Assembly: GCF_963921235.1 (NCBI RefSeq)
Contig: NC_086110.1
Coordinates: forward strand, 12,834,001-12,898,000
Origin: Mobula hypostoma
Lineage: Eukaryota
Length of the DNA: 64,000 bases
Direction: 5' to 3'
Position 1 is the stretch's first letter. Each line of letters begins with the position of its first letter. Position numbers and translations under genes: made by a program. The notes under the pieces are model-generated. The model had not been told where the DNA came from. It saw only the letters and a program-made list of their open reading frames with translations, and made no database searches. Positions 2,597 through 47,130 of this stretch are shown here, piece by piece.

Positions 2597-2643
2597 TTTA
2601 ATTGTTTTTTTATACAATGCTTGTTTTATATCTCCCCGTCCCT
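2597..2643 (-). other. Ancestral end of gene A displaced by a CR1: last codons (RDGEI*) and ATTAAA poly(A) signal
   Basis: Joining the flanks at the TCCCT duplication gives GTA AAA CCA AGG GAC GGG GAG ATA TAA. ATTAAA lies at 2597-2602 on the minus strand. Confidence 0.6.
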
Positions 2644-4997
2644 AAGTGTGTGCAGGATGGATTCCTGTCACAGTATGTTGACAGGCCGACTAGGGGGAAT
2701 GCCATACTAGATCTAGTATTAGGTAAAGAACCGGGTCAGGTCACAGATTTCTCAGTGGGTGAGCATCTGGGGGACAATGACCACCGCTCCCTGGCCTTTA
2801 GCATTATCATGGAAAAGGATAGAATCAGAGAGGACAGGAAAATTATTAATTGGGGAAGGGCAAATTATGAGGCAATTAGGCTAGAACTTGCGGGTGTGAA
2901 ATGGGATGATGTTTTTTCTCGGAAATATACTATGGACATGTGGTCGATATTTAGAGATCTCTTGCAGGATGTTAGGGATAAATTTGTCCCGGTGAGGAAG
3001 ATAAAGAATGGTAGGGTGAAGGAACCATGGGTGACAAGTGAGGTGGAAAATCTAGTCAGGTGGAAGAAGGCAGCATATATGAGGTTTAGGAAGCAAGGAT
3101 CACATGGGTCTATTGAGGAAAGGAGGTTAAGAAGGGGCTGAGAAGAGCAAGAAGGGGGCATGAGAAGGCCTTGGCGAGTAGGGTAAAGGAAAACCCCAAG
3201 GCATTCTTCCATTATGTGAAGAACAAAAGGATGACAGGAGTGAAGGTAGGACCGATTAGAGATAAAGGTGGGAAGATGTGTCTGGAGGCTGTGGAAGTGA
3301 GCGAGGTCTTCAATGAATACTTCTCTTCGGTATTCATCAATGAGAGGGAACTTGATGACGGTGAGGACAATATGAGTGAGGTTGATGTTCTGGAGTATGT
3401 TGATATTAAGGGACAGAGGGTGTTGGAGATATTAAAATACATTAGGACGGATAGGTCCCCGGGGTCTGACAGAATATTCCCCAGGATGCTCCATGAGGCA
3501 AGGGAAGAGATTGCTGAGCCTCTGGCTAGGATCTTTATGTCCTCGTTGTCTACGGGAATGGTACCAGAGGATTGGAGGGAGGCGAATGTTGTCCCCTTGT
3601 TCAAAAAAAGGTAGTAGGGATAGTCCGGGTAATTATAGACCAGTGAGCCTTACGTCTGTGGTGGGAAAGCTGTTGGAAAAGATTCTTAGAGATAGGATCT
3701 CTGGGCATTTAGAGAATTATGGTCTGATCGGGGCAGACAGCATGGTTTTCTGAAGGGCAGATCGTGTCTAACAAGTTTGATGGAGTTCTTTCAGGAGGTG
3801 ACCAGGCATATAGATGAGGGTAGTGCAGTGGATGTGATCTGTATGGATTTTAGTAAGGCATTTAACAAGATTCCACATGGTAGGGTTATTCAGAAAGTCA
3901 GAAGGCATGGGCTGGAGGGAAGTTTGGCCAGGTGGATTCAGAAATGGCTTGCCTGGAGAAGGCAGAGGGTCATGGTGGAGGGAGTACATTCGGATTGGAG
4001 ATTTGTGACTAGTCGTGTCCCACGAGGATCAGTTCTGGGACCTCTACCTTTCGTGATTTTTATTAATCACCTGGATGTTGGGGTAGAAGGGTGGGTTGGC
4101 AAGTTTGCAGGCGACACAAAGGTTGGTGGTGTTGTAGATAGTGTAGAGGATTGTCGAAGGTTGCAGAGAGACATTGATAGATTGCAGAAGTGGGCTGAGA
4201 AGTGGCGGATGGACTTCAACCCAGAGAAGTGTGAGGTGGTACACTTTGGAAGGACAAACTCCAAGGCAGAGTACAAAGTAAATGGCAGGATACTTGCAAG
4301 TGTGGAGGAGCAGAGGGATCTGGGGGTACATGTCCACAGATCCCCGAAAGTTGCCTCACAGGTAGATAGGGTAGTTAAGAAAGCTTATGGGGTGTTAGCT
4401 TTCATAAGTCGAGGCATAGAGTTTAAGAGTCGTGAGGTAATGATGCAGCCTATAAAACTCTGATTAGGCCACACTTGGAGTACGGTGTCCAATTCTGGTC
4501 ACCTCAATATAAGAAGGATGTGGAAGCATTGGAAAGGGTACAGAGGAGATTTACCAGGATGCTGCCTGGTTCAGAGAGTGTGGATTATGATCAGAGATTA
4601 AGGGAGCTAGGGCTTTACTCTTTGGAGAGAAGGGGGATGAGAGGAGACATGATAGAGGTGTACAAGCTATTAAGAGGAATAGACAGAGTGGATAGCAAAC
4701 GCCTCTTCCCCAGGGCACGACTGCTCAATACAGGGGGATATGGCTTTAAGGTAAGGGGTGGGAAGTTCAAGGGGGATATTAGAGGAAGGCTTTTAACTCA
4801 GAGAGTGGTTGGTGCGTGGAATGCACTGCCTGAGTCAGTGGTGGAGGCAGATACACTAGTGAAGTTTAAGAGACTACCAGACAGGTATATGGAGGAATTT
4901 AAGGTGGGGGGTTATATGGGAGGCAGGGTTTGAGGGCCGGCACAATAATGTCGGCCGAAGGGCCTGTACTGTGCTGTACTATTCTATGTTCTCTGTT
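2644..4997 (+). mobile_element. CR1 LINE, 5-prime truncated ORF2 (end of endonuclease plus RT), frameshifted
   Basis: PTRGNAILDLVL, YRPVSLTS, DFSKAF, GSVLGP and FAGDTK motifs, microsatellite-like tail, and a TCCCT flank duplication at 2639-2643 and 5002-5006. Confidence 0.95.
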
Positions 4998-5006
4998 CGA
5001 ATCCCT

Positions 5007-5063
5007 TGGTTTTACCTTTGCATAGACAACATGTTCGTCCTGGCGCCTGACCTGGTCAATAAC
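5007..5063 (-). pseudogene. Formerly coding tail of gene A beyond the TAA (VIDQVRRQDEHVVYAKVKP) with canonical ITIM VVYAKV at 5013-5030
   Basis: In frame with exon 7 after one TAA. Continues across the CR1 insert to RDGEI* at 2626-2643. Confidence 0.7.
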
Positions 5064-5126
5064 TTAGTTTTCTCTCGTGTTTGGTGTAGCATAGGCAAGG
5101 TTATGTTCAACTGGCGCTAGTCCAGC
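5064..5126 (-). CDS. Gene A exon 7: terminal cytoplasmic exon AGLAPVEHNLAYATPNTREN*
   Basis: Acceptor atatctttttaacag|GCT, phase 0. Contains the degenerate ITIM-like LAYATP; TAA at 5064-5066. Confidence 0.75.
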   Translation of the reverse strand, partial: AGLAPVEHNLAYATPNTREN

Positions 5127-5465
5127 CTGTTAAAAAGATATAGTTAACTCTATTCGTGGCGAGTCAAATGCAATTCAAATTCCATAATGAGAAAATGAGT
5201 ATTAAAACATAAGCGTAAATGAGTAAAATGCGGCATAATAACATTCTAACATCAGTAAATGATATTGCCATGTACAAACGTTTTATGTTATTTCAGAAAC
5301 GGTAGGAAATGTGTTTTCCCTAGCGCTGAAAGTCTTTATGATCTTTTAAGACCGAAATTGATTTTCAAGCACCATTTATTCTACGAGTAGGGTGAGTTTC
5401 TCATCTGCTGTCATCTTTTTTCTTTCGCAGTTATTTCCTTCTCCCTCCATTCCCCAACAGCTTAC

Positions 5466-5500
5466 GCAGGGACAACTGTCACCTTTCTTTTCCTCGGACA
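5466..5500 (-). CDS. Gene A exon 6: cytoplasmic (VSEEKKGDSCPC)
   Basis: Acceptor ccatag|TG, donor TGC|gtaagc, 35 nt, phase 1-0. Supplies exactly the phase change needed to enter the tyrosine-motif frame of exon 7. Confidence 0.6.
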
Positions 5501-5635
5501 CTATGGACTATTGAAGCAGCGTTGTGCAGGTCAGTTCGTCATCGGTTCTCATACACTCACAGACATATCCTTTCTGCGGTCGTAATTGATCATAATATTC
5601 CTCTATCAATTCCTCTCAGAAGCAAAAAGTAAAAC

Positions 5636-5692
5636 CTGTATCACCAACCGGTTCTCCGCTCTGACGTGCTTCCTCGGAGGTTGTTTTAATAC
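5636..5692 (-). CDS. Gene A exon 5: cytoplasmic (GIKTTSEEARQSGEPVGDT)
   Basis: Acceptor ttttttaatccattag|GT, donor CAG|gtttta, 57 nt, phase 1-1, open in frame with the TM exon. Confidence 0.65.
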
Positions 5693-5874
5693 CTAATGGA
5701 TTAAAAAATACAACACCTTAAATAATAGTGGTAACGTTGGAAAAGTTGAAGTTGCGCAGTGGATTGCAATCAAATTTCTTGCCTAAAGGTGTAACTCCTG
5801 ACAGCTGTCCAAAATATTATCGGCGCACACTGTGGCCATGAAATGTGTTGTGCATGACCCTTCATGAATGTAGT

Positions 5875-6058
5875 GGATCTAGATTTTGATTGAAAGAGTA
5901 GATGGGCAGTAGCTTGTGGCTACGGGGGTCAGGGGGTATGGAGGGAAGGCTGGGGCGGGGTTCTGAGTTGGATGATCAGCCATGATCATAATAAATGGCG
6001 GTGCAGGCTCGAAGGGCCGAATGGCCTACTCCTGCACCTATTTTCTATGTTTCTATGT
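5875..6058 (+). mobile_element. CR1 3-prime end fragment in the gene A TM-cytoplasmic intron
   Basis: 3-prime hairpin plus (ttctatgt) tail. 5958-6058 is identical to 41500-41600. Confidence 0.8.
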
Positions 6059-6342
6059 TATATCTCAAAAGAACGAAAATATGACAGTAAAAGTATTATT
6101 ACTTGTGTAAAATCGCCGCAGGAAGTCACAGCCTGAAAACCCCAGGTGTCTGAAAATCGTAGGTACAAGGGATGATTGGAGAACTTGAGCGAGAATGTAA
6201 AATTATCCTGTTATTTATAATTAGTATTGTCGAATGTGAATCCGATAATGCCTTGGAAATCTTGATTCTCTCATTATCATTTCCTCTTTCAATCTGCAGA
6301 GGTAATAAATGGAAATACTTGTCAAATCATTCATGTTCTTAC

Positions 6343-6450
6343 CACGTTTTGCCTTAACTCCGATTCTTATCAAAATTATAATCAGCGTTACAATTGCCAG
6401 TCCGCCCAATGCACTTCGAAAAATCAAGATTTTATTGCTGTCTTCCGGAT
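6343..6450 (-). CDS. Gene A exon 4: transmembrane exon DPEDSNKILIFRSALGGLAIVTLIIILIRIGVKAKR, with Arg near the extracellular side
   Basis: Acceptor ttttttttaacag|AT, donor CGTG|gtaag, 108 nt, phase 1-1. About 21 hydrophobic residues followed by a basic stop-transfer segment. Confidence 0.9.
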
Positions 6451-6910
6451 CTGTTAAAAAAAAACCAACCGTGAAACATATATAAATGTATAGAGACCGT
6501 GAGACAAGAAAGTAGAGCTTTTTAATAGGTAATTCAAGCCTGAACAAATAAAGATTGCAAGAGACGCAGTATGACACGGGTTTTAAGGTGATGATGGGAC
6601 TTATGGAGCGAACAGATAATCTTACATAGTGGTTCTTTACAGACAGTACTTTTTATTTGCATTAAGAGAATTTTTCTTTTTACGATGCCTTTGCAAATAG
6701 TTTAATCGCAACTTCGAAATGACATCGTTTCTGTTTCTGAACTTTCACTCGAAAACTCTCAACAGATTCCATTAGCAAACAAGAGAAAATGACTTTTTAC
6801 CATGTGGAATTTCTCACTGTAAGACAACACAAGAAGCATTAATAGAATATCAAATGTCGACTTTTCAGGCCGAGATCCAACATCATGACTTCATCGAGAC
6901 ACCATCTTAC

Positions 6911-7204
6911 CTTGCTCCTGGATGTAGCTGAAATTGGCAGGCACCGTGAGGGAGACATGCGACACCAGACAGGTGTAAGTATCTTTTCCCAAAGTAGACT
7001 GCGTGATTTCCAATAAACTAAATGCTTCGTACAAGCCGTCCACGTTCCGGTTTGTCACACTTTCTATTCCAGTGCGAATTTGCTTGTTATTTCTTTGCCA
7101 AACGATTTCTAATTTCTCCGGGTAGAAACAAGCCGTTTTACAAAGGAGCTTTCGAGGAGACGAAAACCCTCCAACAGGAACAATTTCCACTGGAGTTGGA
7201 GGAG
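6911..7204 (-). CDS. Gene A exon 3: C1-set Ig constant domain
   Basis: Acceptor ctcaag|CT, donor CAAG|gtaag, 294 nt, phase 1-1. C1 hallmarks LLCKTACFYPE, IVW, NVDGLY, YTCLVSH. Confidence 0.95.
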
Positions 7205-8334
7205 CTTGAGTAAAAACATAGTTATATTGAGTATTTTCAATCCATATCAGTACAGGTAGATTCCTTTATCTCCCCGCCAACTAGCATGACGTTCAACTAT
7301 CAAATTAGTTACCCGCTAGTATTAACCAGTATTTAATAAATTCTTTCAACTTCACGTTCTGTTTATTGTTGCTCATCCATACACACACACTCCGAAGCGA
7401 ACCTTTGTTCTTCTGGGGCCAAGTTGCAAAATAGAGTATATATAGTCACACACATATAGTCACCATCCAGCACTGACAGTCACAAAATAAGCAAAATAAA
7501 ATATAGTCAGTTTGGGAGAAGGATGAAAGGAGAAGTTCAGCGAATGCACCTCGATGGCGAAGCTAAGAGATCCGAAGTGAGGAAGACGTTCTCTTTTGAA
7601 TGGCGTTTGAGCTTCATTGCACAGTTGGGCTTGCGGCGGGCGTTAGCTTTGGAAACCAGACTACCTTTGGATTTTTCATTTCGTATCAAAACTGAGCTAC
7701 AAATCCCAAACTATCACAGATTTCTATAGTATGAATGCACATGAAGTTTAATATTCTGGCAGCTCAACTGCTTCGGGAGTGTTTCAAGTCCTGGGGTTGA
7801 GCTTTCTAGTCATAAACATTCAGTAATAGAGCTTTTCCCGGAATGTGAACCATTCCTGGAACTGTTACCCCGTATTGATTGTGACAAATCATCTCTTCCG
7901 TGAAACAACCAGGAATACAAATGCAAATTGATATTAAGTTCTTTGATTCTATAGTTGTTTTCTTTCTAAAGTCTGAAGACATGCAGCAAACTGGTCGACA
8001 GTGACTTGGCACTGCTATAGGATCGTTTATGAAAACGATGCCTTGTAGAGGGTCAATCAGGAATTGAACAACTTCAATTTCACCATGCACCGTGTTTACT
8101 AAAACGTGAGACCAATTTTAAGATTTTGTAAACGTGGACCACTTCCGCGACAGCTATGGTCGGTGTCTGACAGGGGAGATTCAATAGTTAGATTGTTTTA
8201 TCTGTTTATCACAGCAGTTAGGGTTTCGCTGTGCCTACAATAGTCATCCTGAGCGTTGCCTGACTCCACTTCCCACGCCTATACCGACGTCAACGTTCTT
8301 GGCCTTCTCAAATTCTAGGTGAAGGACAATTCTA

Positions 8335-8700
8335 AGGTGAAAAAAAATGAAGGGATTCTACAGATACATTAAGCATAAAGGGATAGCGACAGACAAAGTT
8401 GATCCATTTGAAGATCAGCGGGTTCAACAATACCTGGAACCGAAAGAACATGAACCTTATATATTTCCATTCGTATTTATTCGGGAGACGTACACAGAGA
8501 CTAAGGCAAAACAGAAGCAATGTCATGGCCCATATACCGATTACAGTCTTGAGGCAGATTAGGGTGTAGCAGTCCCCAGGACATGGCAAAGATTCCCATC
8601 GGACCTTTTCGGAAGCTAGTGCAGAAAGTGAAAGGGCCCCGATAGAGGTATTCAAAACGTTCTTACCCGTGGGTGAAGTGCCGGAGGACTAGATTATAAC
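8335..8700 (+). mobile_element. CR1 ORF2 fragment
   Basis: KGFYRYIKHK-type motif in ORF 8347-8562. Confidence 0.7.
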
Positions 8701-8711
8701 TAATGTTTTAA

Positions 8712-10265
8712 TACCATATAACTATAGGATATAGGAGCCTAAGCCCACCAAGTTTGCTCTGCAATTTCATCATAGATAATATTTTCTGCTCAGCCCCAAT
8801 CTCCTGCCTTCTCCCCATAGCTCGTCATGCTCTATCCGATCAAGAATCTATCAACCTCTGCTTGAAATATCCATAAAGGCTTGGTCTCCATACCTGCCTG
8901 TGGCAAAAAAAAAAATTCCACAGGTTCTGCACTCTCTGGCCATAGGCTGTCCTCTTCATCTCCTCTGGACTCTTCCACCATAGGAAGCATCCTCTCCACA
9001 TCCACGCGATCAAGTACTTTCACCTTTCTTTAGGGTTCAATGCCGTCGCCCCTGTTTTGTTTCTGAATTCCAGTGAAGTCAGGCCCAGAGCCATAAAACG
9101 TTCTTCATATGACTAGCTATTGAATTCTGGAATCATTGTCATGAACCTCCTTTGAATCTTCTCCAGTTTCAGCATATTCTTTCCAAGATAGGGGGCCTAA
9201 AACTGCTCACAATACGCTGTGACGCCTCACCAGTGCTTTATAAAGTCTGAATATTACATCCTTGCTTTTATATTCTAGTCCTCTTGAAATGAATGCGATC
9301 ATTGGATTTGCCTTCCTGACCACAGACCCAACCTGTATGGAATACAGCACACGGACTCGCAAGTCCCTTACCACCTCAATGTTTTTTTGTGTTTTCTCTC
9401 CAGTTGGAAAATATTCAAAACTTTCACACCCTCCACCAAACTGCATGACCACACACTTCTCGATACTGTATTCTATCTGCCATTTCTTTGCCTGTCCTCC
9501 TAATCTGTCTCAGTCTTTCTGTAGCCTCTCTATTTCCTAAAACTACCTACCCGTCCACCTCTCTTCATATCGTCAGCAAACTTTGCAACAAAGCCATCAA
9601 TTCCACCATCCTTATCATTGACATATAACCTTAAACGAATCGGTCACTGCACAGACCTCTGTGGAACACCGTTAGTCACGGGCAGCCAACCAGAAAATGC
9701 TCCCTTTATTCCCATTCTTTGTCTCTTACAAACCAGCCACTGCTTTATCCACCCTAGAATCTTTCCTGTTATACTTTCGGCTCGTAGCTTGTTTAACAGC
9801 CTTGTGTGTGGTACCTTGTCAAAGTCCTTCTGAAAATCCAAGTACACAGCAATCGATTCTGCCTATCTTTATCTATCCTGCTTTTATTCCGTCAAATAAT
9901 TCAATCAGATTTGTCTGGCGAGAGTTTCCTTTGAAGAAATCATGCTGACAATGGCGTGTTTTATTATGTGTCTCCAAGTAACCTAACACCTGATCCTTAA
10001 TGATGGACTCCAACATCTTGACAACCAGTGAGGTCAGACTGACTGGCCTATAGTTTCCACTTTCTGCCTCTCTACCTTCTTGAAGACTGGAGTGACATTT
10101 GCAATTTTCCAGTCTTCCAGAACCATTCCAGAATCTAGTAATTCTCGGAAGACCTTTACTGATGCCTCCAGAATCTCTCAGCAACTTCTATCAGAATCAT
10201 GATATGTACATAATCTGGTCTCGGTGAATTACCTTCTTTCAGACCTTTCAGTTTCCCAGGAACTT
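8712..10265 (-). mobile_element. CR1 ORF2 3-prime half, degenerate
   Basis: NYRPVSLTS, YLDFQKDFDKVPH and KANPMIAFISRGLEYKSK in the minus-strand ORFs. Confidence 0.9.
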
Positions 10266-10299
10266 GCTCTCCAATTATGTCCCTAGTTTTGCTGTTGTT

Positions 10300-11420
10300 C
10301 TAGATAGACTCTCGGAAGAAACCAGCTAGTCTATAATATAGTTGGTATTACAGTGAAGTGGGTAAATTATTGGAAGATAATTCCAAAGATTGGGATACAT
10401 AAATATTTAGATAGACTGGGCTTGTTTGGGAATAAGCAACATTATTTTGTGCAATGTAGGATCTGTCTAACCAATCTTAATGAGCTTTTCGAGCTGGTTA
10501 CCATGGATCTTGATGAAGGATAACAGTGGATATGGTCAACATGGATTTTAGCAAGAACTTTGGAAAAGTTCTGCAGCGGGGTGGTGGGCTGATCAAGTAC
10601 GTTCGCTTGGCATTCAGGATGAAGGAGTAAGTTGTGTCTAACGTTGGGTTCGCGGGAGAAGCCAGAGTATGGTAGTAGATGGTTGGTTTTTGATCGTAGG
10701 CCTTTGACTGGTGGTGTGCCGCATGGCGACCAAAGCTTGCAGCGGGTTAAGGACCAGGTGTAAAAATGCGCTGAAAATGGCAGATAGGATTTAATGAAGG
10801 TAATTGTAAGCTGTTGTTCTTTGAGAAGACAAACCATTCTTTGATATACACAGTGAACGAGACTGGCATTGACGAGTGCGGTAAAAATAAATCTTGGAAT
10901 TATAGATCGATAATTCAATGAAAATGGAGTCAAAGGCGGATGGTATCGTAAAGATAACCTTTGTCATATCGGCCTTCATATATCAGCGTATTGAGTGTAG
11001 AAGTTGGGATGCCATGCTGAAGATGTATTAGACGTCAGTGAGAACAAATTTGGAGTATTGTTCGCAGTTCTCGTTACTTATCTGCAGGAAAGTTATCAAT
11101 ATGTTTGAATGAGTAGAAAGAAAACTTACAACATGTGGCAGGAATTTGAGGACATGAATTATGAGGAAAGTTTAACAGGTAAAGATTTTTTTCCATGATT
11201 CTTAACAGAACGAGCGAACATTTGATAGAGGTATACAAAATTATGAGGGATGTAGATATGATGCATCTAAGCCTGCATTATCCACTGAGGTTGGGTGAGA
11301 ATGTAATTGGAATTCATAGCTTCAGAGTGAAATGAGAAGTATTAAAGGCGAACCTGAGGGGAAATGTCTTCACTCTGACGGTGATGCTATTGTGGAGTGA
11401 GCTGACAGCGGAGGTGTTTG
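10300..11420 (+). mobile_element. Old degenerate CR1 RT region
   Basis: Decayed gtcaacatggattttagcaag and ttggagtattgt-type RT and 3-prime landmarks, with many stops. Confidence 0.7.
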
Positions 11421-12203
11421 CGCTCGACTCCCTGCGCTTTACTATTCAACCGTATCAAAATTCATCTCAATCTTGAGAGGTCGATATTTCTGCCCGTTTT
11501 GTATGGTGAAAGAAGTATAGATTTTGCTAATCCTGCATGATAAAAGTTGGAATGACATTTTGCAGTGCATGCGATAAATTGTTACTTGATGTTAGAATTA
11601 ACTCATTTGGAGCTGGGTATTATTCCTGTCTACTTGTTGATGGGGAAATGGAGCATTGTGCTGCTACAGGCAGATTCTTTGATAGAGATTACTCTATTTA
11701 AGTATTAATATTCTGCGTCCTCTGTGATGCGGAATCGAGTTATCCAACTCCAGCCATTCACATTAATATTAATATTATTTCAGCCTCTTGCTTGCAACAC
11801 AATCCTAACCTTACTTGAAAAGTAATTCGTTATATTCAAAGTACCTTCGCGATAATGAGGGTAACGTCCTAAGCTATCACTACCCTTGGACATTCGGTTT
11901 AATTGGGAGATAGCTGATGAGCAGGGCTGGACGAACAGCAGTGGGGAAGGAGCCGGGGAAGTACGATACGATTAACGGAATCAACTCCACTATGCGCCTA
12001 ATAGTTGCTACATGAAATGTGATTAATTTTTCTGCTCTTTATAATTCTGAATTTAAAATCACTGGACTGGGGTATATTTTAACACGGAAATCAAATGTAT
12101 TCTCACCGTTTGTTTTATCAAGTAGAAATATTTCGTTTTATCCCCATCACTAAGTTTGATGTAAAATGCACAGAGCCGAAAATCTCGAAACGGCCACACT
12201 CAC

Positions 12204-12509
12204 CGAACACAGTGAACTTGGTGCCACCTCCAGTCCCTAAGTATTGTTCCTGAAACTTTACTGCACAGTAATACAGCCCAGAGTCGCTGAATTTGACATT
12301 CCAGAGTACAAGTGTTCCTCTTCCCCTTTCTACAGTAAATTGTCTTCTGCTGTCCCTTTCTAAAAACCCCTTCTCGCCTTTCCTCCACCAACGAACGTCA
12401 ACGGTATCGTTTGTCAGTAGTAATTTGCAGAACATCGTAACATTCGCACCAACCGGGACGTTCAGGTCCCGAGGGAATTGAGATACTTCGTTCGCCGTTA
12501 ATTTGACGA
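12204..12509 (-). CDS. Gene A exon 2: single-exon V(J)-type Ig domain (non-rearranging)
   Basis: Acceptor ggcag|TC, donor TTCG|gtgagt, 306 nt, phase 1-1. Shows B-strand Cys (TMFC), C-strand WW, DSGLYYC and a J-like GGGTKFTV inside the same exon. Confidence 0.95.
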
Positions 12510-12548
12510 CTGCCGGATAAATAAGCAAGAGTATTAATAACAGTTAAA

Positions 12549-12569
12549 CACAGTGAATTAACAAAAACT
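12549..12569 (+). other. RSS-like motif CACAGTG-aatta-ACAAAAACT with a non-canonical 5-nt spacer in the leader-V intron
   Basis: Perfect heptamer and 8/9 nonamer, with the heptamer facing the V exon 39 nt away. Confidence 0.3.
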
Positions 12570-12712
12570 GATGACGTAAGTCACTGGATATCTAAGAGTG
12601 AAAGACGGCCGAATAGATGAAAAACTGTAACCGAATATGCCGCAGGCACCCAGAGTTAAATATTATTAAATAGAATATTCAATTCGGAAACGGCGTTTAT
12701 AAATCAGCATAC

Positions 12713-12767
12713 TTAGCCAAGTAATAGCCAGAAGTGCTATGTACGAAACCGTAAACTTCTCCGCCAT
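12713..12767 (-). CDS. Gene A exon 1: signal peptide MAEKFTVSYIALLAITWL (phase 1)
   Basis: ATG at 12767, 18 hydrophobic codons plus 1 nt, donor A|gtatgc. A paralogous 55-nt exon lies at 32963-33017 at a similar distance from its V exon. Confidence 0.8.
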
Positions 12768-12844
12768 CTTACAGAAACCAAATCGACCAATTCTTGCAAT
12801 GCAAGTGGTATTTTAAACAATTTTCTGGAGGAAAAGGACTTCGT

Positions 12845-12911
12845 GAGGAAATGTATTAATCATGCAAACATGACGTAGGATGACGCCACCGCACGGCAGT
12901 ATAATGTGGTT
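12845..12911. promoter_or_regulatory. Candidate proximal promoter of gene A (ETS, octamer-like, two CRE-like and RUNX motifs)
   Basis: GAGGAA 12845, ATGCAAAC 12862, TGACGTAG 12871, TGACGCCA 12881 and TGTGGTT 12905, all about 80-145 nt upstream of the ATG. Motif match only. Confidence 0.35.
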
Positions 12912-16249: not shown

Positions 16250-17735
16250 TTAAAAAAAGTCAACTGCACTTACCATTGATGTTTTCAGAGAAGCACAATC
16301 CGTCTGTTGTTGTGATTGGCGGTGAAATCGTCAATGATTTTCTGGATGTCAAGTGCTTTGGTCCACCGGCTGTTTATGGCCAACAGGGCCATGTTGCTGT
16401 TCTGAACATCGCCGCTGCTATTCCTTAGGTAGTTTTTGAGGCGTCGGAGGCAAGAGAAACTCCGTTCGCATGAGGCAGATGTCGCAGGTAGAGACAGTGA
16501 TATGCAGATTAGTTTGTATAAGTCTATAAATGCATCGCGGTAGGGTCTCATTAGAGCTAGAAATTCCACTGTCCTTGCTAGAGACTCAACCACTGCTCTC
16601 ATATACTCACGATTTTCTTGGACAATCTTTGCATGTCCTTTGTCAAGCATATTTCCTAATCTTGAACCATCTTGTTTTCTCAAACTGAATTCGGCCCGTG
16701 CCTCCATAACAAACTTATGAGCTGCACTTGAATGGTGGGTTTTGAAAGCTATTATAGCTTTCCGCGAGTTGTGGTAATCGGTGACAGTGAAGGTAGACTC
16801 AGAATGGAACCCATGTTCTCCACACAGGAAATGCCTGCATGCGAAGCAGAATGTAATATCTTTCGTGATCGAATATTCCAGTCAGTCAAACCAGCCACGA
16901 ATAAAACTCCTTTGCTGATTGTCAAACTGTTGCGAGTAGCGAAGGTTCCTTTCTCAATGCTGACCGACGGGGTCCTTCCTCAGGCTGCTGGCTAACATCG
17001 CTAACATTATTCCCGCTCGCACTAAGAGCAGTTTCATCCACGTTCTCTTCGGAATCCCGCTCCATTTCTTGTTCCTCTACTTCGCCCTCACACTCCTTCG
17101 ATGAACTGCTGTCGCCCTCATCCCCACTTACTTCTTTCTGCATGTCACTTTCAATTCAGACAGGCTCAGGCTGAGACACCACTGATCCCTCTGGATGAGG
17201 TCGTTTTCTCCCTAAAAATCGATCCATTTTTCACTCCGGCCAAAATAATGCACGTGCCAGGCCCACAATAGCTTGTAAAAGCACAATGTGTGTGTGTGTG
17301 TGTGTGTGTGGGGGGGGGTGCACCCGTTAGTCTCGCGAGACCATGGATCTGCGCCTGGATGTATACTGTCAATCTCTCGCGTGAGTGAGAGAGAGTGACA
17401 TCACCACCTTAAGTGATCTTAGATCAGTTTAACTGATCTGAGGACAGTAACGACAAGACATTGACAACGAACGAATAAGCAGAAGTGTAGGGTGGATCTT
17501 ACAGAGCTTATAACTTTATTGCTGCGTGGGTGCTATGGTAGTTGGGGGCACTGTTTCACTATATCAACTGGAGAAACAAGCTGTATTCAAAACTATACAG
17601 AGAAAGCAAAGCAGCTGCAATTTGTATGTGAAATTTCAGTTAATTTCTTGGTGGTGCTACGGTGGTGCTATTGTAATTTCTGTTGGGGCTAGAGCACCAG
17701 CTAGCACCACCTTAGCGCCGCCCCTGAAACCTCGA
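16250..17735 (-). mobile_element. hAT DNA transposon relic (C-terminal dimerisation domain)
   Basis: LSLPATSASCERSFSCLRRLKNYLR in ORF 16285-16707, and a TIR-like TAGCGCCGCCCCTG near 17723-17736. Confidence 0.8.
17287..17310 (+). repeat. (TG)n microsatellite
   Basis: Directly visible. Confidence 0.95.
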
Positions 17736-24693: not shown

Positions 24694-25328
24694 TGTCATG
24701 GTCCGGTCCGTCAAGTCCTTATTCCAGTTCACGGTCCGGTCCATCGACCCTTGCTCCAGGTTTTCCTGTCTACCCTGTGACTGTTCTTGAGCTCCAATTG
24801 AGGCACCTGATGCCAGTTGGGGCTGGCTGCATAAATACCCTCAGAGACCAGGGCGTGGCTGCTGGATTGTTCTTGTCCTATTCCTTGTATCCCTTCCTCT
24901 GCCTTCTGTTTCCTCGCCGGTAGCCCTGCCTTGTCTTGCCGGTAACTCTCGCCTTGCCTTGCTTTGCCAGAAGCCTTGCTTTGTCTTGCCGGTAACTCTC
25001 GCCTCACCTGAATTTCTCGTCTCCCCTTGCATTGCCTGAAGCCTTGCCTTGTCTTGCTGGTAACTCTCGCTTCGTCTCGCCTGCAGTCTTGTACTGGAGC
25101 CACTCTTTACCTAGCTCCCTTCCTGTCCCTTGCTTCCGCCCAGGTAAGCCAGGCCATCTTACCATTGCCTGCGGTTGGTTCTGTCCCTTCCTGTACCTTG
25201 CCTCCGTCGGGTAAGTCAGGCCGTCTTGCCATTACCTGCGGTTGGTTCTGTCCCTTCCTGTCCCTTGCCTCTGTCGGGTGGTAATCCACGCCCTGCCCAG
25301 GAGAACTGCGCCCTGACCAGGAGGAGGC

Positions 25329-26270
25329 TGCCTGGCCTCAAGCCTGAAGACCCCATCCTCCTGCCTGGCCTCAAGCCTGAAGACCCCAGCCTCTTGCCTG
25401 GCCTCAAGCCTGAAGACCCCATCCTCCTGCCTGGCCTCAAGCCTGAAGACCCCAGCCTCCTGCCTGGCCTCAAGCCTGAAGACCCCAGCCTCCTGCCTGG
25501 CCTCAAGCCTGAAGACCACAGCCTCCTGCCTGGCCTCAAGCCTGAAGACCCCAGCCTCCTGCCTGGCCTCAAGCCTGAAGAGTCCCGCCTCCTGCCTGGC
25601 CTCAAGCCTGAAGAGTCCCGCCTCCTGCCTGGCCTCAAACCTGAAGAGTCCCGCCTCCTGCCTGGCCTCAAGCCTGAAGAGTCCCGCCTCCTGCCTGGCC
25701 TCAAGCCTGAAGAGTCCCGCCTCCTGCCTGGCCTCAAGCCTGAAGAGTCCCGCCTGCTGCCTGGCCTCAAGCCTGAAGACCCCAGCATCCTGCCTGGCCT
25801 CAAGCCTGAAGAGTCCCGCCTCCTGCCTGGCCTCAAGCCTGAGGAGTCCCGCCTCCTGCCTGGCCTCAAGCCTGAGGAGTCCCGCCTCCTGCCTGGCCTC
25901 AAGCCTGAGGAGTCCCGCCTCCTGCCTGGCCTCAAGCCTGAAGACCCCAGCCTCCTGCCTGGCCTCAAGCCTGAAGAGTCCCGCCTCCTGCCTGGCCTCA
26001 AGCCTGAAGAGTCCCGCCTCCTGCCTGGCCTCAAGCCTGAAGAGTCCCGCCTCCTGCCTGGCCTCAAGCCTGAAGAGTCCCGCCTCCTGCCTGGCCTCAA
26101 GCCTGAAGAGTCCCGCCTCCTGCCTGGCCTCAAGTCTGAAGAGTCCCGCCTCCTGCCTGGCCTCAAGCATGAAGAGTCCAACCTCCTGCCTGGCCTCAAG
26201 CCTGAAGAGTAAAGCCTCCTGCCTGGCCTCAAGCCTGAAGAGTCCCGCCTCCTGCCTGGCCTCAAGCCTG
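25329..26270 (+). repeat. 33-bp minisatellite (ctcctgcctggcctcaagcctgaagagtcccgc), about 28 copies
   Basis: Directly visible. Generates the 345, 349 and 312-aa repetitive ORFs. Confidence 0.95.
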
Positions 26271-27560
26271 TAGCCTCTAGCCTCCTGCCAAGCCTCGGCT
26301 CAAGTCCGTAGCCTCTAGCCTCCTGCCAAGCCTCGGCTCAAGTCTCTAGCGTCAAGCCTCAAGCTTCAAGACTACAGCCTCCTGCCTCCTGCCCAGCCTC
26401 AGTTCAAGTCTCTAGCCTCAAGCCTGAAGACTCCAGCCTCCTGCATCCTGCCAAGCCTCGCCTCTAGCCTCAAGCCTCTAGCCTGAAGACTCCAGCCTCC
26501 TGCCTCCTGCCAAGCCTCGCCTCTAGCCTCAATCCTCAAGCCTGAAGACTCCAGCCTCCTGTCTCCTGCCAAGCTTCGCCTCTAGCCTCTAGCCTCAAGT
26601 TTCAAGCCTGAAGACTCCAACCTCCTGCCTCCTGTCAAGCCTCGCCTCTAGCCTCAAGCCTCAAGCCTGAAGACTCCAGCCTCCTGCCTCCTGCCACATC
26701 TCTCCTCTAGCCTCAAGCCTGAAGACTCCATCCTCCTGCCTCCTGCCAAGCCTCGCCTCTAGCCTCGAGCCTCAAGCCTGAAGACTCCAGCCTCCTGCCT
26801 CCTGCCAAGCCTCGCCTCTAGCCTCAAGCCCCAAGCCTGAAGACTCCAGCCTCCTTCCTCCTGCCAAGCCTCTCCTCTAGCCTCAAGCATGGACTCCAGC
26901 CTCCTGCCTCCTGCCAAGCCTCGCCTCTAGCCTCAAGCCTCAAGCCTGAAGATTCCAGCCTCCTGCCTCCTGCCAAGCCTCGGCTCAAGTCTCTAGCGTC
27001 AAGCCTCAAGCTTCAAGACTACAGCCTCCTGCCTCCTACCAAACCTCGGCTCAAGTCTCTAGCCTCAAGCCTCAAGCCTGAAGACTCCAGCCTGCTGCCT
27101 CCTGCCAACCCTCGCCTCTAGCCTCAAGCCTCAAGCCTCAAGCCTGAAGACTCCAGCCTCCTGCCTCCTGCCAAACCTCGCCTCTAGCCTCTGGCCTCAA
27201 GCCTGGACTCCAGCCTCCTGCCTCCTGCTAAGCCTCGCCTCTAGCCTCAAGCCTGGACTCCAGCCTCCTGCCTCCTGCCAAGCCTCGCCTCCAGCCTCAA
27301 GCCTCAAGCCTGAAGACCCCAGCCTCCTGCCTCCTGCCAAGCATCGCCTCTAGCCTCAAGCCTCGAGGCTGAAGACTCCAGCCTCCTGCCAAGCCTCACT
27401 TCTAGCCTCTAGCCTGACGACTCCAGCCTCCTGCCTCCTGCCAAGCCTCGTCTCTAGCCTCAAGCCTGACGACTCCAGCCTCCTGCCTCTTGCCTAGGCT
27501 CGCCTCAAGCCTGAAGCCTGAAGACTCTAGCCTCGTCCTGCCTGCCTGCCAAGCCTCGTC
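26270..27560 (+). repeat. Degenerate higher-order repeat of 5-7-bp modules (cctcaag, cctgaag, actccag, cctcctg, cctctag)
   Basis: Directly visible modular repeat related to the 33-mer. Confidence 0.9.
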
Positions 27561-42324: not shown

Positions 42325-45300
42325 GTTAGAAACCATAGAAAAACTACGGCACAGAAACAGGCCTTTTGGACCTTCTTGGCTGTGCCGAACCATTTTCTGC
42401 CTAGTCCCACTGACCTGCACACGGGCCATATCCCTACATACACCTCCCATCCATGTATCTGTCCAATTTATTCTTAAATGTTAAAAAAGAATCCGCATTT
42501 ACTACCTCGTCTGGCAGCTCATTCCATACTCCCACCACTCTCTGTGTGAAGAAGCCCCCCCTAATGTTCCCTTTAAACTTTTCCCCCCTCACCCTTCGCC
42601 CATGTCCTCTGGTTTTTTTCTCCCCTTGCCTCAGTGGAAAAAGCCTGCTTGCATTCACTCCATCTATACCCATCATAATTTTATATACCTCGATCAAATC
42701 TCCTCTCATTCTTCTACTACCACTCTTTGGCTTCTTCGATTGAGCCAATGTCTAATCCAATTTACCACCTCTCCATGTATACCGAGCGACTGAATTTTCC
42801 TAACTAACCTCCCATGTGGGACCTTGTCAAAGGCCTTACTGAAGTCCATGTAGACAATATCCACTGCCTTCCCTTCATCCACTTTCCTGGTAACCTCCTT
42901 GAAATACTCCAATAGATTGGTCAAACATGACCTACCACGCACAAAGCCAGGTTGACTCTCCCTAATAGGTCACTGTCTATCCAAATGCTTGTAGATTCTG
43001 TCTCTTAGTACTCCCTCCAATAACTTACCTACTACCGACGTTAAACTTACTGGCCTATAATTTCCCGGATTACTTTTCGATCCTTTTTTAAACAATGGAA
43101 CAACATGAGCCACTCTCTAATCCTCCGGCACCTCACCTGTAGACCTGTAGATTTTAAGTATTTCTGCCAGGGCCCCTGCAATTTCAACACTAGTCTCCTT
43201 CAAGGTCCGAGGGTACACCCTGTCAGGTCCCGGGGATTTATCCACTTTAATTTTCCTGAAGACAGGAAACACCTCCGCCTTTTCAATCTGTACAGTTTCC
43301 ATGATCTCACTACTTGTTTCCCTTAATTCCACAGACCATGCCAGTTTCCTTAGTAAATACAGACGCAAAAAATCTATTTAAGATCTCCCCCATTTCCTTT
43401 GGTTCCGCACATAGCCAACCACTCTGATCTTCAAGAGGACCAATTTTGTCCCTTACAATCCTTTTGCTCTTAATATACCAGTAAAAGCTTTTTGGATTAT
43501 CCTTCACTTTGACTGCCAAAGCAACCTCATGTCTTCTTTTAGCCCTCCTGATTTCTTTCTTAAGTATTTTCTTGCACTTCTTGTACTCCTCAAGCACCTT
43601 ATTTACACCCTGTTTCCTATACATGTCATACAGCTCCCTCTTTTTCTTTATTAGAGTTGCAATATACTTTGAGAACCAAGGTTCCTTATTCCTAATCACT
43701 TTGCCTTTAATCCTGACAGGAACATACAAACTCTGCACTCTCAAAATTTCTCCTTTGAAGGCTTCCCACCTACCAATCACATTTTTGCCAGAGAACAACC
43801 TGTCCCAATCCACACGTTTTAGATCCTTTCTCATTTCTTCAAATTTGGCCTTCTTCCATTTCAGAACCTCAACCCTAGCACCAGATCTATCCTTGTCCAT
43901 GATCAAGTTGAAACTAATGGTGTTATGATCACTGGAACCAAAGTGCTCCCCTACACAGACTTCCGTCACTTGTCCTAACTCGTTTCCTAACAGGAGATCC
44001 AATATTGCATCCCCTCTAGTTGGTCCCTCTATATATTGATTTAGAAAATTTTCCTGAACACATTTTACAAACTCTAAACTATCTAGAGCCCTAACAGTAT
44101 GCGAGTCCCAATCAATATATGGAAAATTAAAATCCCCTACCACCACAACTTTATGTTTCCTGCAGTTGTCTGCTATCTCTCTGCAGATTTGCTCTTCCAA
44201 TTCTCGTTGACTATTGGGTGGTCTGTAATACAATCCCACTAATGTGGCCATACCTTTCCTGTTTCTCAGCTCCACCCATAAGGACTCAGTAGACAAGCCC
44301 TCTAATCAGTCCTGCCTGAGCACTGCTGTAATATTTTCCCTAACAAGCAATGCTACTCCGCCACCTTTCATTCCTCTGCCTTGATCACATCTGAAACATC
44401 GGAACCCTGCAATATTAAGCTGCCAGTCCTGCCCCTCCTGTAGCCAAGTTTCACTAATTGTTATAACGTATTAATTCCACGTGTCAATCCACGCCCTCAA
44501 CTCATCCGCCTTCCCCGCAATACTCCTAGCATTGAAATATATACACCTCAGAAGATTTTTACCACCACTTGCAACCTTTCTATTAGCGGATTTGCTTGAA
44601 CTTTTAACATCATTTATTTTCACCCCAGCCATACTGTCAGCTTTGGCACTCTGGCTCCCATCCCCCTGCAAATCTAGTTTAAAGCCTCCCCAATAGCACT
44701 AACAAACCTTCCTGAAAGAATATTGGTCCCCCTGTAGTTCAAATATAACCTGTCTCTCTTGTACAGGTCCCACCTGCCCCAGAAGAGGTCCCAATGATCC
44801 TGAAATCTGAACCCTGCCCCCTACATCAGTTCCTCAGCCACTTGTTCATCCTCCAGAGCATCCTATTCCTACCCTCACTGGCATGTAGCACAGGTAGCAA
44901 TCCTGAGATTACCACTCTTGAGGTCATGCGTTTCAACTTCCTACCAAGCTCTCTATACTCACTCTCCTGGACCTCCTCACTCTTCCTTTCTATGTCATTG
45001 GTACCGATGTGCACCACGACATCTGGCTGATCACCCTACCACTTCAGAATGTCATGCAATCGATCAGAGACATCCTTGACCCTGGCACCCGGGAGGCAAC
45101 AAACCATCCTGGATTCTCTGTCACGACCACAGAACCTCCTCTCTGCAGCTCTAACTATCGAGTCCCCTATCACTACTGCTCTTTTTCCACCCACCCTTCT
45201 GCACTGCAGAGCCAGACTCAGTGCCAGAGATCCGGCTACTGCAGCTTGTCCCAGGTAAGTCATCCCCCCACAACAATATCCAATGCGGTATACTTGTTGT

Positions 45301-46050: not shown

Positions 46051-46129
46051 GACATGATTGAGCAATTTCCACGAGCACTGGAATAAGTTTCAGTGTGGCA
46101 TAAATTTCAATATTTTTAAAAATTTTAAA

Positions 46130-47130
46130 TCGTCTTTGTACATCAACGATTTGGATTATGGAATAGATGGCTTTGTGGCTAAGTTTGCTGACGATACGAA
46201 GATAGGTGGAGGGGCCGGTAGTGCTGAGGAAACGGAGAGTCTGCAGAGAGACTTGGATAGATTGGAAGAATGGGCAGAGAAGTGGCAAATGAAATACAAT
46301 GTTGGAATGTGTATGGTTGTGCACTTTGGCAGAAAAAATAAACGGGCAGAATATTATTTAAATGGGGAAAGAATTCAAAGTTCGGAGATGCAACGGGACT
46401 TGGGAGTCCTCGTACAGGATACCCTTAAGGTTAACCTCCAGGCTGAGTCGGTAGTGAAGAAGGCGAATACCATGTTGGCATTCATTTCTTGAGGAGTAGA
46501 GTATAGGAGCAGGGATGTGATGTTGAGGCTCTATAAGGCACTGGTGAGACCTCACTTGGAGTACTGTGGGCAGTTTTGGTCTCCCTATTTAAGAAAGGAT
46601 GTGCTGACATTGGAGAGGGTACAGAGAAGATTCACTGGAATGATTCCGGGAATGAGAGGGTTAACATATGAGGAGCTTTTGTCCGCTCTTGGACTGTATT
46701 CCTTGGAGTTTAGAAGAATGAGGGGAGACCTCATAGAAACATTTCGAATGTTGAAAGGCATGTACCGTGTGGATGTGGCAAAGTTGTTTCCCATGATGGG
46801 GGAGTCTAGTACGAGAAGGCATGACTTAAGGATTGAAGGGCGCCCATTCAAAACAGAAATGCGAAGAAATTTTTTTAGTCGGAGGGTGGTGAATCTATGG
46901 AATTTGTTGCCACGGGCAACAGTGGAGGCCAAGTCATTGGGTGTATTTAAGGCAGAGATTGATAGGTATCTGAGTAGCCAGGGCATCAAAGGTTATGGTG
47001 AGAAGGCGGTGGAGTGGGACTAAATGGGAGAATGGATCAGCTCATGATAAAATGGCTGAGCAGACTCGATGGGCCGAATGGCCGACTTCTGCTCCTTTGT
47101 CGTATGGTCTTATGGTCTTATGGTCTCTAT
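46130..47130 (+). mobile_element. CR1 3-prime part
   Basis: FADDTKIGG, LVRPHLEYC and a (tatggtct) tail. Confidence 0.9.

Follow-up and report, generated by a model that had tools for sequence, protein, structure and literature searches.

Receptors in which a germline-joined V(J) segment is followed by a C1-set domain are rare outside the immunoglobulins (Ig), the T-cell receptors (TCR) and SIRP, and they are central to the debate on the target of the RAG transposon (PMC2785349, PMC10751288, PMC12227049). A gene of this plan is found in a 64-kb stretch of the Mobula hypostoma genome (RefSeq assembly GCF_963921235.1, contig NC_086110.1, positions 12,834,001 to 12,898,000), hereafter called the window, and the question raised by this locus is which kind of receptor the gene encodes. 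A preliminary description, made from the letters of the DNA, had read it as a non-rearranging, TCR-chain-like but innate receptor with a tyrosine-motif signalling tail of its own. The locus proves to be one copy of a large germline V(J)-C1-transmembrane (TM) receptor family present in sharks, rays and a chimaera, and the gene itself is probably, on sequence grounds, the short-tailed, activating partner of a SIRP-like paired receptor. All positions given below are coordinates of the window, and all receptor exons lie on its minus strand.

Exons, domains and relatives of the receptor gene

The leader of the gene is split, as is canonical for antigen-receptor genes and UrIg2 (PMC12227049). Exon 1 (12767-12713, 55 nucleotides (nt)) carries the start codon and most of the signal peptide, ends on the donor GTATGC and is separated from exon 2 by a leader intron of 203 bp. 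Exon 2 (12509-12204, 306 nt, phase 1-1) encodes the end of the leader and a compact V domain with a J-like G strand (LGTGGGTKFTVF), exon 3 (7204-6911, 294 nt, phase 1-1) a C1-set domain, and exon 4 (6450-6343, 108 nt) a connecting peptide and a TM helix containing an Arg (KILIFRSALGGLAIVTLIIILIRIGVKAKR). The leader, V, C1 and TM exons are intact, in phase 1 and bordered by GT-AG sites, and the three domain exons have the 1-1 phase that is usual for domains of the Ig superfamily. The window holds one C1 exon only; neither a second C1 exon nor an inhibitory-type TM exon was found in it by tblastn and a stop-to-stop scan of open reading frames (ORFs). When the seven exons of the preliminary description are spliced in silico, they give a stop-free ORF of 305 amino acids with AG/GT at all borders. 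The first four of these exons are independently supported, whereas the tail exons 5 to 7 are not.

This receptor gene is not unannotated, since it is already predicted in RefSeq as XP_062923614.1 (P0162), under the machine name "natural cytotoxicity triggering receptor 3 ligand 1-like" (NCR3LG1-like). The leader, V and C1 of P0162 are identical to those of the window model, the TM is identical except for the choice of the acceptor (the RefSeq model takes an alternative exon 4 acceptor at 6441, 9 nt downstream), and the 6547-bp span of its coding sequence (CDS) corresponds to 12767..6221. Exon 1 matches the N-terminus of P0162 exactly and shows 98% nt identity to Mobula birostris, in which the orthologue is P0158 ("programmed cell death 1 ligand 1-like"), 92% identical.

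Exon 2 matches the Pfam V-set profile at 12205-12507 with 47.8 bits and an E value of 1.9e-12, over profile positions 1-108 of 109. The J-like motif GGGTKFTV lies inside this exon, so that V and J-like strand are uninterrupted. In the direct reading of the V exon for recombination signal sequences (RSS), the sole heptamer-like CACTGTG (12214) falls inside the F-T-V codons and has no nonamer at 12 or 23 bp; V and J-like strand thus share one exon without RSS, as first proposed. A confident AlphaFold2 model, built from a 35-sequence family alignment (mean pLDDT, the predicted local distance difference test, 84), folds the protein into two beta sandwiches and places the TM helix at 220-251. The V domain, covered by the family alignment A3, shows strands A, A', B, C, D, E, F and G, without C'' and with C' not assigned. 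With 53 residues between Cys46 and Cys100 it is compact, and it falls short of a full V topology with C' and C'' and about 65-75 residues between the cysteines. Its framework region 2 (FR2) reads WWRKGEK, without the interface Gln. Against PDB sequences, the V profile is best matched over strands A-F by I-set domains of titin, contactin and Robo, and over its full length, G strand included, by TCR-alpha/beta single-chain Fv (42F3), pIgR and amphioxus VJ-C2.

The second domain had been described as a true C1-set domain, and this holds. Exon 3 scores 47.1 bits against the Pfam C1-set profile at 6912-7202 (gathering cut-off 21; E 3.2e-12), and the domain scores 45.1 bits in P0162. C1-set domains are characterized by 13 residues from the B-strand Cys to the C-strand Trp, (F/Y)(F/Y/H)P at the BC loop and xVxH after the F-strand Cys (Hatherley et al., PMC2785349). 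All of this is present in the C1 exon, with C-KTACFYPEKLEIV-W spanning 13 residues, FYP and YTCLVSH, and the corresponding residues are invariant or nearly so in the family alignment A4. The best single-domain match of the C1 profile among PDB sequences is the Ig lambda constant domain, with Ig heavy constant and UrIg2 among the top chains, and the whole-protein profile has Ig lambda V-C, UrIg2 V-C1 and SIRP-alpha d1-d2 among its top chains. The connecting peptide SYIQEQDPEDSNKILIF lacks Cys, and no membrane-proximal Cys is found.

An exhaustive HMMER search with the V exon retrieved a set of single-domain relatives at 37-80% identity. Members of the family are found among the rays in Mobula, Hypanus, Hemitrygon, Pristis and Narcine, among the sharks in Heterodontus, Chiloscyllium, Scyliorhinus, Heptranchias and Mustelus, and in the chimaera Callorhinchus. 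All close matches that were identified in this search and in two word-indexed searches are chondrichthyan. No bony-vertebrate orthologue was identified among the V-exon HMMER matches looked up, which are chondrichthyan single-domain proteins and reptile multi-Ig proteins. The reptile proteins P0062, P0095, P0024, P0089 and P0097 (from turtles, a snake and a gecko) are tandem-Ig proteins that match the ray V exon over its full length, including the J-like strand, and bear the machine names pIgR-like, titin-like and FCRL5-like. Two profile searches of 5.8 billion proteins, with a reach limited by word sharing, returned the same 34 proteins, chondrichthyan only. Among the clusters of the AlphaFold Database (AFDB), one match stands well above background (E 7.7e-21, 30% identity), which we take from its accession series to be of Chiloscyllium, the organism not being shown; the rest start at E 3e-14.

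The preliminary assignment to a multigene, innate-type family of non-rearranging V(J)-C1-TM receptors is supported. A single 80.6-Mb chromosome of M. hypostoma carries at least seven of the family proteins, with the Mobula cluster on OY992605.1, and in Callorhinchus the family occupies more than 400 kb of one scaffold (MU249845.1, about 15.2-15.7 Mb), where non-family neighbours suitable for synteny were not seen, the three loci viewed holding family genes only, 10-kb flanks included. The family has no curated name, and no published account of a chondrichthyan V(J)-C1 family was found in the literature searched. The automatic names of the relatives are SIRP-alpha-like, NCR3LG1-like, TCR-beta-like, Ig-lambda-like, MHC II DP-alpha-like, PD-L1-like and tapasin-related-like. 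These RefSeq names are uninformative because those of close paralogues contradict each other, and naming the family after any of the seven labels was rejected.

The cytoplasmic tail and the TM exon

Many paralogues (P0014, P0151, P0152, P0181, P0125, P0175 and others) have long tails with several tyrosines of the immunoreceptor tyrosine-based inhibitory motif (ITIM) or switch motif (ITSM) type, such as TEYAPL and LTYAALQL; the recurrent types are xTYAxLxL, xEYAxL and TLYADV. Exon 5 of paralogue P0014 (locus L001) has 44 nt and ends on CCG|GTAGGT, exon 6 (AEQAAVEHTTEYAPLNMRQSKVFRKGLQKEERIIYSQ) starts in phase 0, and the last exon codes TKRNGADKLTYAALQL...TLYADV. The window has an exon 5 at 5692-5649 (cytoplasmic GIKTTSEEARQSGEP) with the donor CCG|GTTGGT (5649|5648) at the paralogue's position, and joining 5649 to 5126 keeps the frame and gives a protein of 289 amino acids. 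The acceptor at 5126 is also that of the paralogue's exon 6, and the sequence entered there is exon 6 of the ancestral tail (5126-5016, AGLAPVEHNLAYATPNTREN), in which a TAA at 5066-5064 is followed by the relic ...RRQDEHVVYAK and a donor GT at 5015. The seven-exon chain had instead used a longer exon 5 of 57 nt (5692-5636), a 35-nt exon 6 (5500-5466), which is the sole 35-nt AG...GT segment that preserves the frame, and a 63-nt exon 7 (5126-5064) ending at the TAA. The 35-nt exon was rejected, as it has no counterpart in any family protein and is unnecessary, because the donor at the paralogue's position already joins 5126 in frame; the segment 5500-5466 is probably no exon.

Other 3' ends are used by the RefSeq models. 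In M. hypostoma, the model reads past the donor of the TM exon into 6342-6221, an open stretch (GKNMNDLT...IRQY*) that forms the 3' end of the CDS, with its stop at 6223-6221. In M. birostris, the model of the orthologue reads past exon 5, the equivalent stop in the window being the TGA at 5618-5616. The read-through stretch 6342-6221 is 100% identical at the nt level in M. birostris, so its conservation is uninformative. Every version of the 3' end gives a short tail of about 24-40 amino acids without an inhibitory motif.

In the nucleotide comparison with L001, the TAA at 5066-5064 replaces an AAA (Lys) of P0014. The same TAA is present in the M. birostris locus L005, where the exon-5 region is identical, and the truncation therefore predates the split of the two species. 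Behind the TAA, tblastn with P0014 and P0106 reads the relic as VVYAKV. A relic of the last exon lies at 909-800 (NGADRLTCAARQL...HTLSADI); 1 nt is missing from its start, and the exon has lost the Tyr of LTYAALQL (TAC->TGC) and that of TLYADV (TAC->AGC). In M. birostris, this relic shows a different indel at the same A-run (1-nt gap), another frame and AAC at the second Tyr codon. By these changes, the region behind the TAA is drifting. In NLAYATP, the tyrosine that remains in front of the stop is followed by a Pro at +3 and does not conform to an ITIM or an ITSM. The predicted tail is a stump of an ancestral inhibitory tail, cut by the TAA and followed by decayed relic exons, and the signalling tail once ascribed to the gene is not supported.

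The TM exon has another ancestry than its neighbours. In V, the gene is 90% identical to P0153, an ITIM-bearing paralogue and its closest ectodomain relative in M. birostris, 65% and 79% identical to the inhibitory P0014 and P0151 of M. hypostoma, and 48% and 50% identical to P0036 and P0034 of subfamily B. The C1 domain gives the same picture (92% for P0153, 89% and 88% for P0014 and P0151, 53% for each of P0036 and P0034). In the TM exon, the identities are 43% to P0153 and 38% to each of P0014 and P0151, versus 79% and 65% to P0036 and P0034, and the cytoplasmic exons are of the inhibitory type again. Because V, C1 and cytoplasmic exons are of the inhibitory type and the TM exon is subfamily-B-like, the gene is an inhibitory-type gene with a TM exon acquired from another subfamily. 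In the V+C1 tree, P0162 falls into a single tight clade with its orthologue P0158 and the ITIM-bearing P0153. As far as the sequences go, this is what paired receptors look like, their ectodomains being nearly the same and their tails opposite.

The window itself holds further pieces of subfamily B. A paralogous V(J) exon lies on the minus strand at 32766-32464, 20 kb upstream of the gene, with a leader at about 33015-32961. It is 44% identical to the V of the gene and 58-65% identical to P0034/P0036, carries an in-frame TAA in its CDR3-like loop (GQQ*IFENGSGSQLIVL), and has no C1 exon downstream that was found in the window. Between this V exon and the receptor gene, two orphan TM cassettes related to P0034/P0036 are located on the minus strand, one open at 29053-28943 (DLESTDERLILGYAVAGMIIVAPIISATTIGLKAKHG) and one at 22991-22881 in which the donor is preceded by a stop and the helix contains an Arg (ALGRLVIL). 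The subfamily-B V exon and TM cassettes are thus nearby sources for an exchange of exons or for unequal crossing-over.

The TM Arg of the gene (LIFRSALGG) is located in the outer part of the helix and aligns with the Arg of the shark proteins P0137 (LIYRS), P0150 (ICRS) and P0051, all short-tailed models. A conserved shark clade that includes P0137, P0186, P0187 and P0188 combines the TM HLIYRS...IIFDHV, with Arg and Asp in or near the helix, and short tails, and has the appearance of an old branch of activating type within the family.

The two Mobula loci differ by about 2% in the background. Over the V exon and the adjacent intron (11100-12900), divergence rises to 4-9%, and the V exon has 93.8% nt identity to M. 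birostris versus about 98% in the background. A second stretch of raised divergence is seen at 600-1500. The ratio of nonsynonymous to synonymous change (pN/pS) is 0.79 for V, 0.49 for C1 and 0.34 for TM, all from few sites, and all three exons are open in both species. Together, these values agree, at the level of sequence comparison, with an ectodomain that still works and, in the V region, with an old allelic lineage or gene conversion from a paralogue. Positive selection on V was rejected as an explanation, since the raised divergence extends into the flanking intron.

A paired-receptor explanation and its rivals

The explanation that is considered likely is that of a short-tailed, SIRP-like paired receptor copy, derived from an inhibitory gene by loss of its ITIM tail and either activating via an adaptor or acting as a decoy. 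In such a family of SIRP-type paired receptors, the ITIM/ITSM tails would recruit SH2 phosphatases, and other members are short-tailed. The window copy would descend from an inhibitory gene and has the TM exon of another subfamily's type, with its Arg in the outer helix; the inhibitory tail is cut by the TAA, and the exons behind the stop are decaying. The protein would be carried by leukocytes, and its compact V may bind the same ligand as the inhibitory partner, or a similar one. A positive signal could be given via an Asp-bearing adaptor with an immunoreceptor tyrosine-based activation motif (ITAM), of the FcR-gamma/CD3-zeta or DAP12 type, docking on the TM Arg. This coupling is suggested by analogy with FcR-gamma- and DAP12-coupled receptors in general, such as NKp46, LILRA, OSCAR and SIRP-beta. 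The alternative outcome would be a signalling-dead decoy.

No bony-vertebrate family is clearly closest to the chondrichthyan one by fold and sequence. A Foldseek search of Swiss-Prot models hardly separated TAPBPR, SIRP-alpha, CD276, B7-H6, Ig lambda, butyrophilins, TCR beta, PD-L1 and Skint, which all scored between E 2e-14 and 5e-13 at 14-22% identity, and the best 50 matches listed from the PDB are all Fab or antibody-complex entries, most of them labelled light chains. ESM-Atlas features of an inhibitory paralogue ranked SIRP-alpha clusters first (0.97 and 0.96). The likeness to SIRP lies in the plan of the family, that is an N-terminal V with J-like G strand, one or more C1-set domains, a TM and a tail with paired ITIM-type tyrosines, and in the coexistence of inhibitory members with short-tailed, charged-TM members whose ectodomains are near-identical. 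SIRP-alpha has pairs of cytoplasmic ITIMs, and the activating SIRP-beta a short tail, a basic TM residue and coupling via DAP12; the window gene has a short tail, no ITIM and a TM Arg, and paralogues have ITIM/ITSM tails. Two C1-like stretches are seen in the family members P0168, P0173 and P0174, whereas the window gene and most ray members have one C1, in contrast to the V-C1-C1 ectodomain of SIRP. Identity to SIRP-alpha is 15-16% in Foldseek, and the SIRP V has about 65 residues between its cysteines, against 53 in the window V.

Other families share part of the plan. PRARP, according to a 2019 paper in J Immunol, reportedly has a non-rearranging VJ exon, a C1 in non-avian orthologues, a TM and an ITIM-type tail, and its orthologues are reported from bony fish to birds but are not known to have been described from cartilaginous fish. 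By this description, its VJ-C1-TM-ITIM plan is like that of the inhibitory members of the family; AFDB-cluster matches beyond the presumed chondrichthyan one are no better than generic V-C proteins. The teleost NITRs and NKp30 also have a germline-joined VJ in an innate receptor, and NITRs come in inhibitory and activating forms. The second domain of NITRs is of the I type and NKp30 has none, whereas the second domain of the window gene has every feature of a C1-set domain. UrIg and UrIg2 are elasmobranch proteins with germline VJ in one exon, a split leader and a true C1 (PMC12227049, PMC10751288). They differ from the family, which has one C1, ITIM or short tails and many genes, in that UrIg2 contains 9-11 C domains and that each is described as single in a given species, with linkage to the MHC or the antigen-receptor (IgH/TCR-alpha-delta) complex and expression in liver and gill (PMC12227049).

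Among the rival explanations, the TCR-chain-like innate receptor with seven exons and a tyrosine-motif signalling tail of its own is most improbable, in spite of the stop-free chain with GT-AG borders and the V(J)-C1-TM order that it shares with a TCR chain. The 35-nt exon has no homologue and is unneeded, LAYATP is not an ITIM, ITSM or ITAM, and the tail is predicted to be a truncated inhibitory one. In the window gene, V and J are fused in one exon, and the interchain Cys and the TCR-type Gln of FR2 are absent. Since the V is compact, with an I-set-like profile, and neither this Gln nor a membrane-proximal Cys is found, the likeness to a TCR chain is architectural. A ligand of the B7-H6 (NCR3LG1) type, displayed on target cells for an NKp30-like receptor, would not be a receptor at all. 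B7-H6, B7 proteins and butyrophilins also consist of a V, a C1-like domain and a TM, and FYP-type motifs are found in the C domains of the B7 family too; the top Foldseek matches include B7-H6, B7-H3 and butyrophilins at E values of about 1e-13, similar to those of SIRP, and RefSeq calls the window gene and many paralogues "NCR3LG1-like". These names are weightless, as paralogues of the same clade bear conflicting ones, and the match to B7-H6 itself (E 9e-14, 18% identity, with 17-19% as the range of this comparison) is no better than that to six other families. The J-type G strand (GxGTxLTV) sets the family apart from B7-H6, the multiple ITIM/ITSM tails together with short-tailed, Arg-bearing partners are a hallmark of paired receptors, and the language-model features favour SIRP, so that a ligand is improbable.

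Tail loss may also have been a step in the death of the whole locus, which would then drift to a pseudogene without a functional protein. The tail exons are clearly decayed, the donors after exon 5 are weak, the pN/pS of V is 0.79, the C1 domain has a species-specific extra Cys, and the window contains a V exon with an in-frame TAA and a TM cassette with a stop. Yet both Mobula species keep open frames and undamaged splice sites for the leader, V, C1 and TM, though the stop in the tail predates their split, pN is lower than pS in C1 and TM, and a complete CDS is modelled by RefSeq in both species, which makes a dying gene unlikely.

The paired-receptor explanation has its own difficulties. Three models compete for the 3' end, and both candidate donors of exon 5 are weak, with a T at +3. 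The TM Arg also aligns with that of the shark protein P0144 (VIYRS), the ITIM-like tail of which is 71 amino acids long and includes LAYASL, so that the Arg does not go with a short tail in every member, and the P0036-type TM, the nearest relative of exon 4, lacks the outer Arg. An extra cysteine, Cys146 (CKTACFYPE, region 7125-7127), stands beside the FYP in the C1 of M. hypostoma and is probably unpaired; the M. birostris orthologue and all other members have an Ala there. The raised divergence of V, as it also covers the intron, speaks for gene conversion or old alleles rather than for clean positive selection. The SIRP likeness draws on architecture and language-model features at 15-16% identity, and the spacing of ITIM and ITSM is generic, being found in Siglecs, CEACAM1 and PD-1 as well.

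Remainder of the window and meaning for the family

Besides members of the receptor family, no genes were seen in the 64-kb window. A minisatellite block with a GC content of up to 0.59 extends over 25116-27558; it is built of two arrays, the first with 29 copies of a 33-bp unit (94% match) and the second with about 21 copies of a unit of 52-59 bp, and it produces spurious long ORFs on both strands. Transposon debris is found at 2602-4930 (+), 43313-44305 (-), 46058-47020 (+) and 16288-16881 (-), and includes fragments of LINE reverse transcriptase and endonuclease (Pfam RVT_1, Exo_endo_phos_2) and an ORF with a hAT dimerisation domain.

It is possible, as a tentative proposal, that the family is a new chondrichthyan-restricted lineage of VJ-C1 paired receptors with a uniquely compact V of I-set length, sister to SIRP and PRARP or older than both. 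If this is true, it would be a living example of the stage with a VJ-C1 ectodomain on a myeloid-type signalling tail that has been proposed for the pre-RAG antigen receptor, and the locus would show that the switch from inhibitory to activating proceeds by exchange of a TM exon and then loss of the tail.

As one of many copies, and one already predicted by RefSeq, the single locus has moderate weight alone. What the window copy documents is a route from an inhibitory to a short-tailed receptor, marked by a TM exon of foreign type with its Arg, a stop shared by two species and decaying relic ITIM exons, each as read from the sequence. The family has inhibitory members and short-tailed partners, yet databases list it under contradictory machine names only. 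A large VJ-C1 family at the base of the jawed vertebrates is a data point to be set beside UrIg, NKp30, PRARP and SIRP, and the whole family merits a phylogenetic and expression study.

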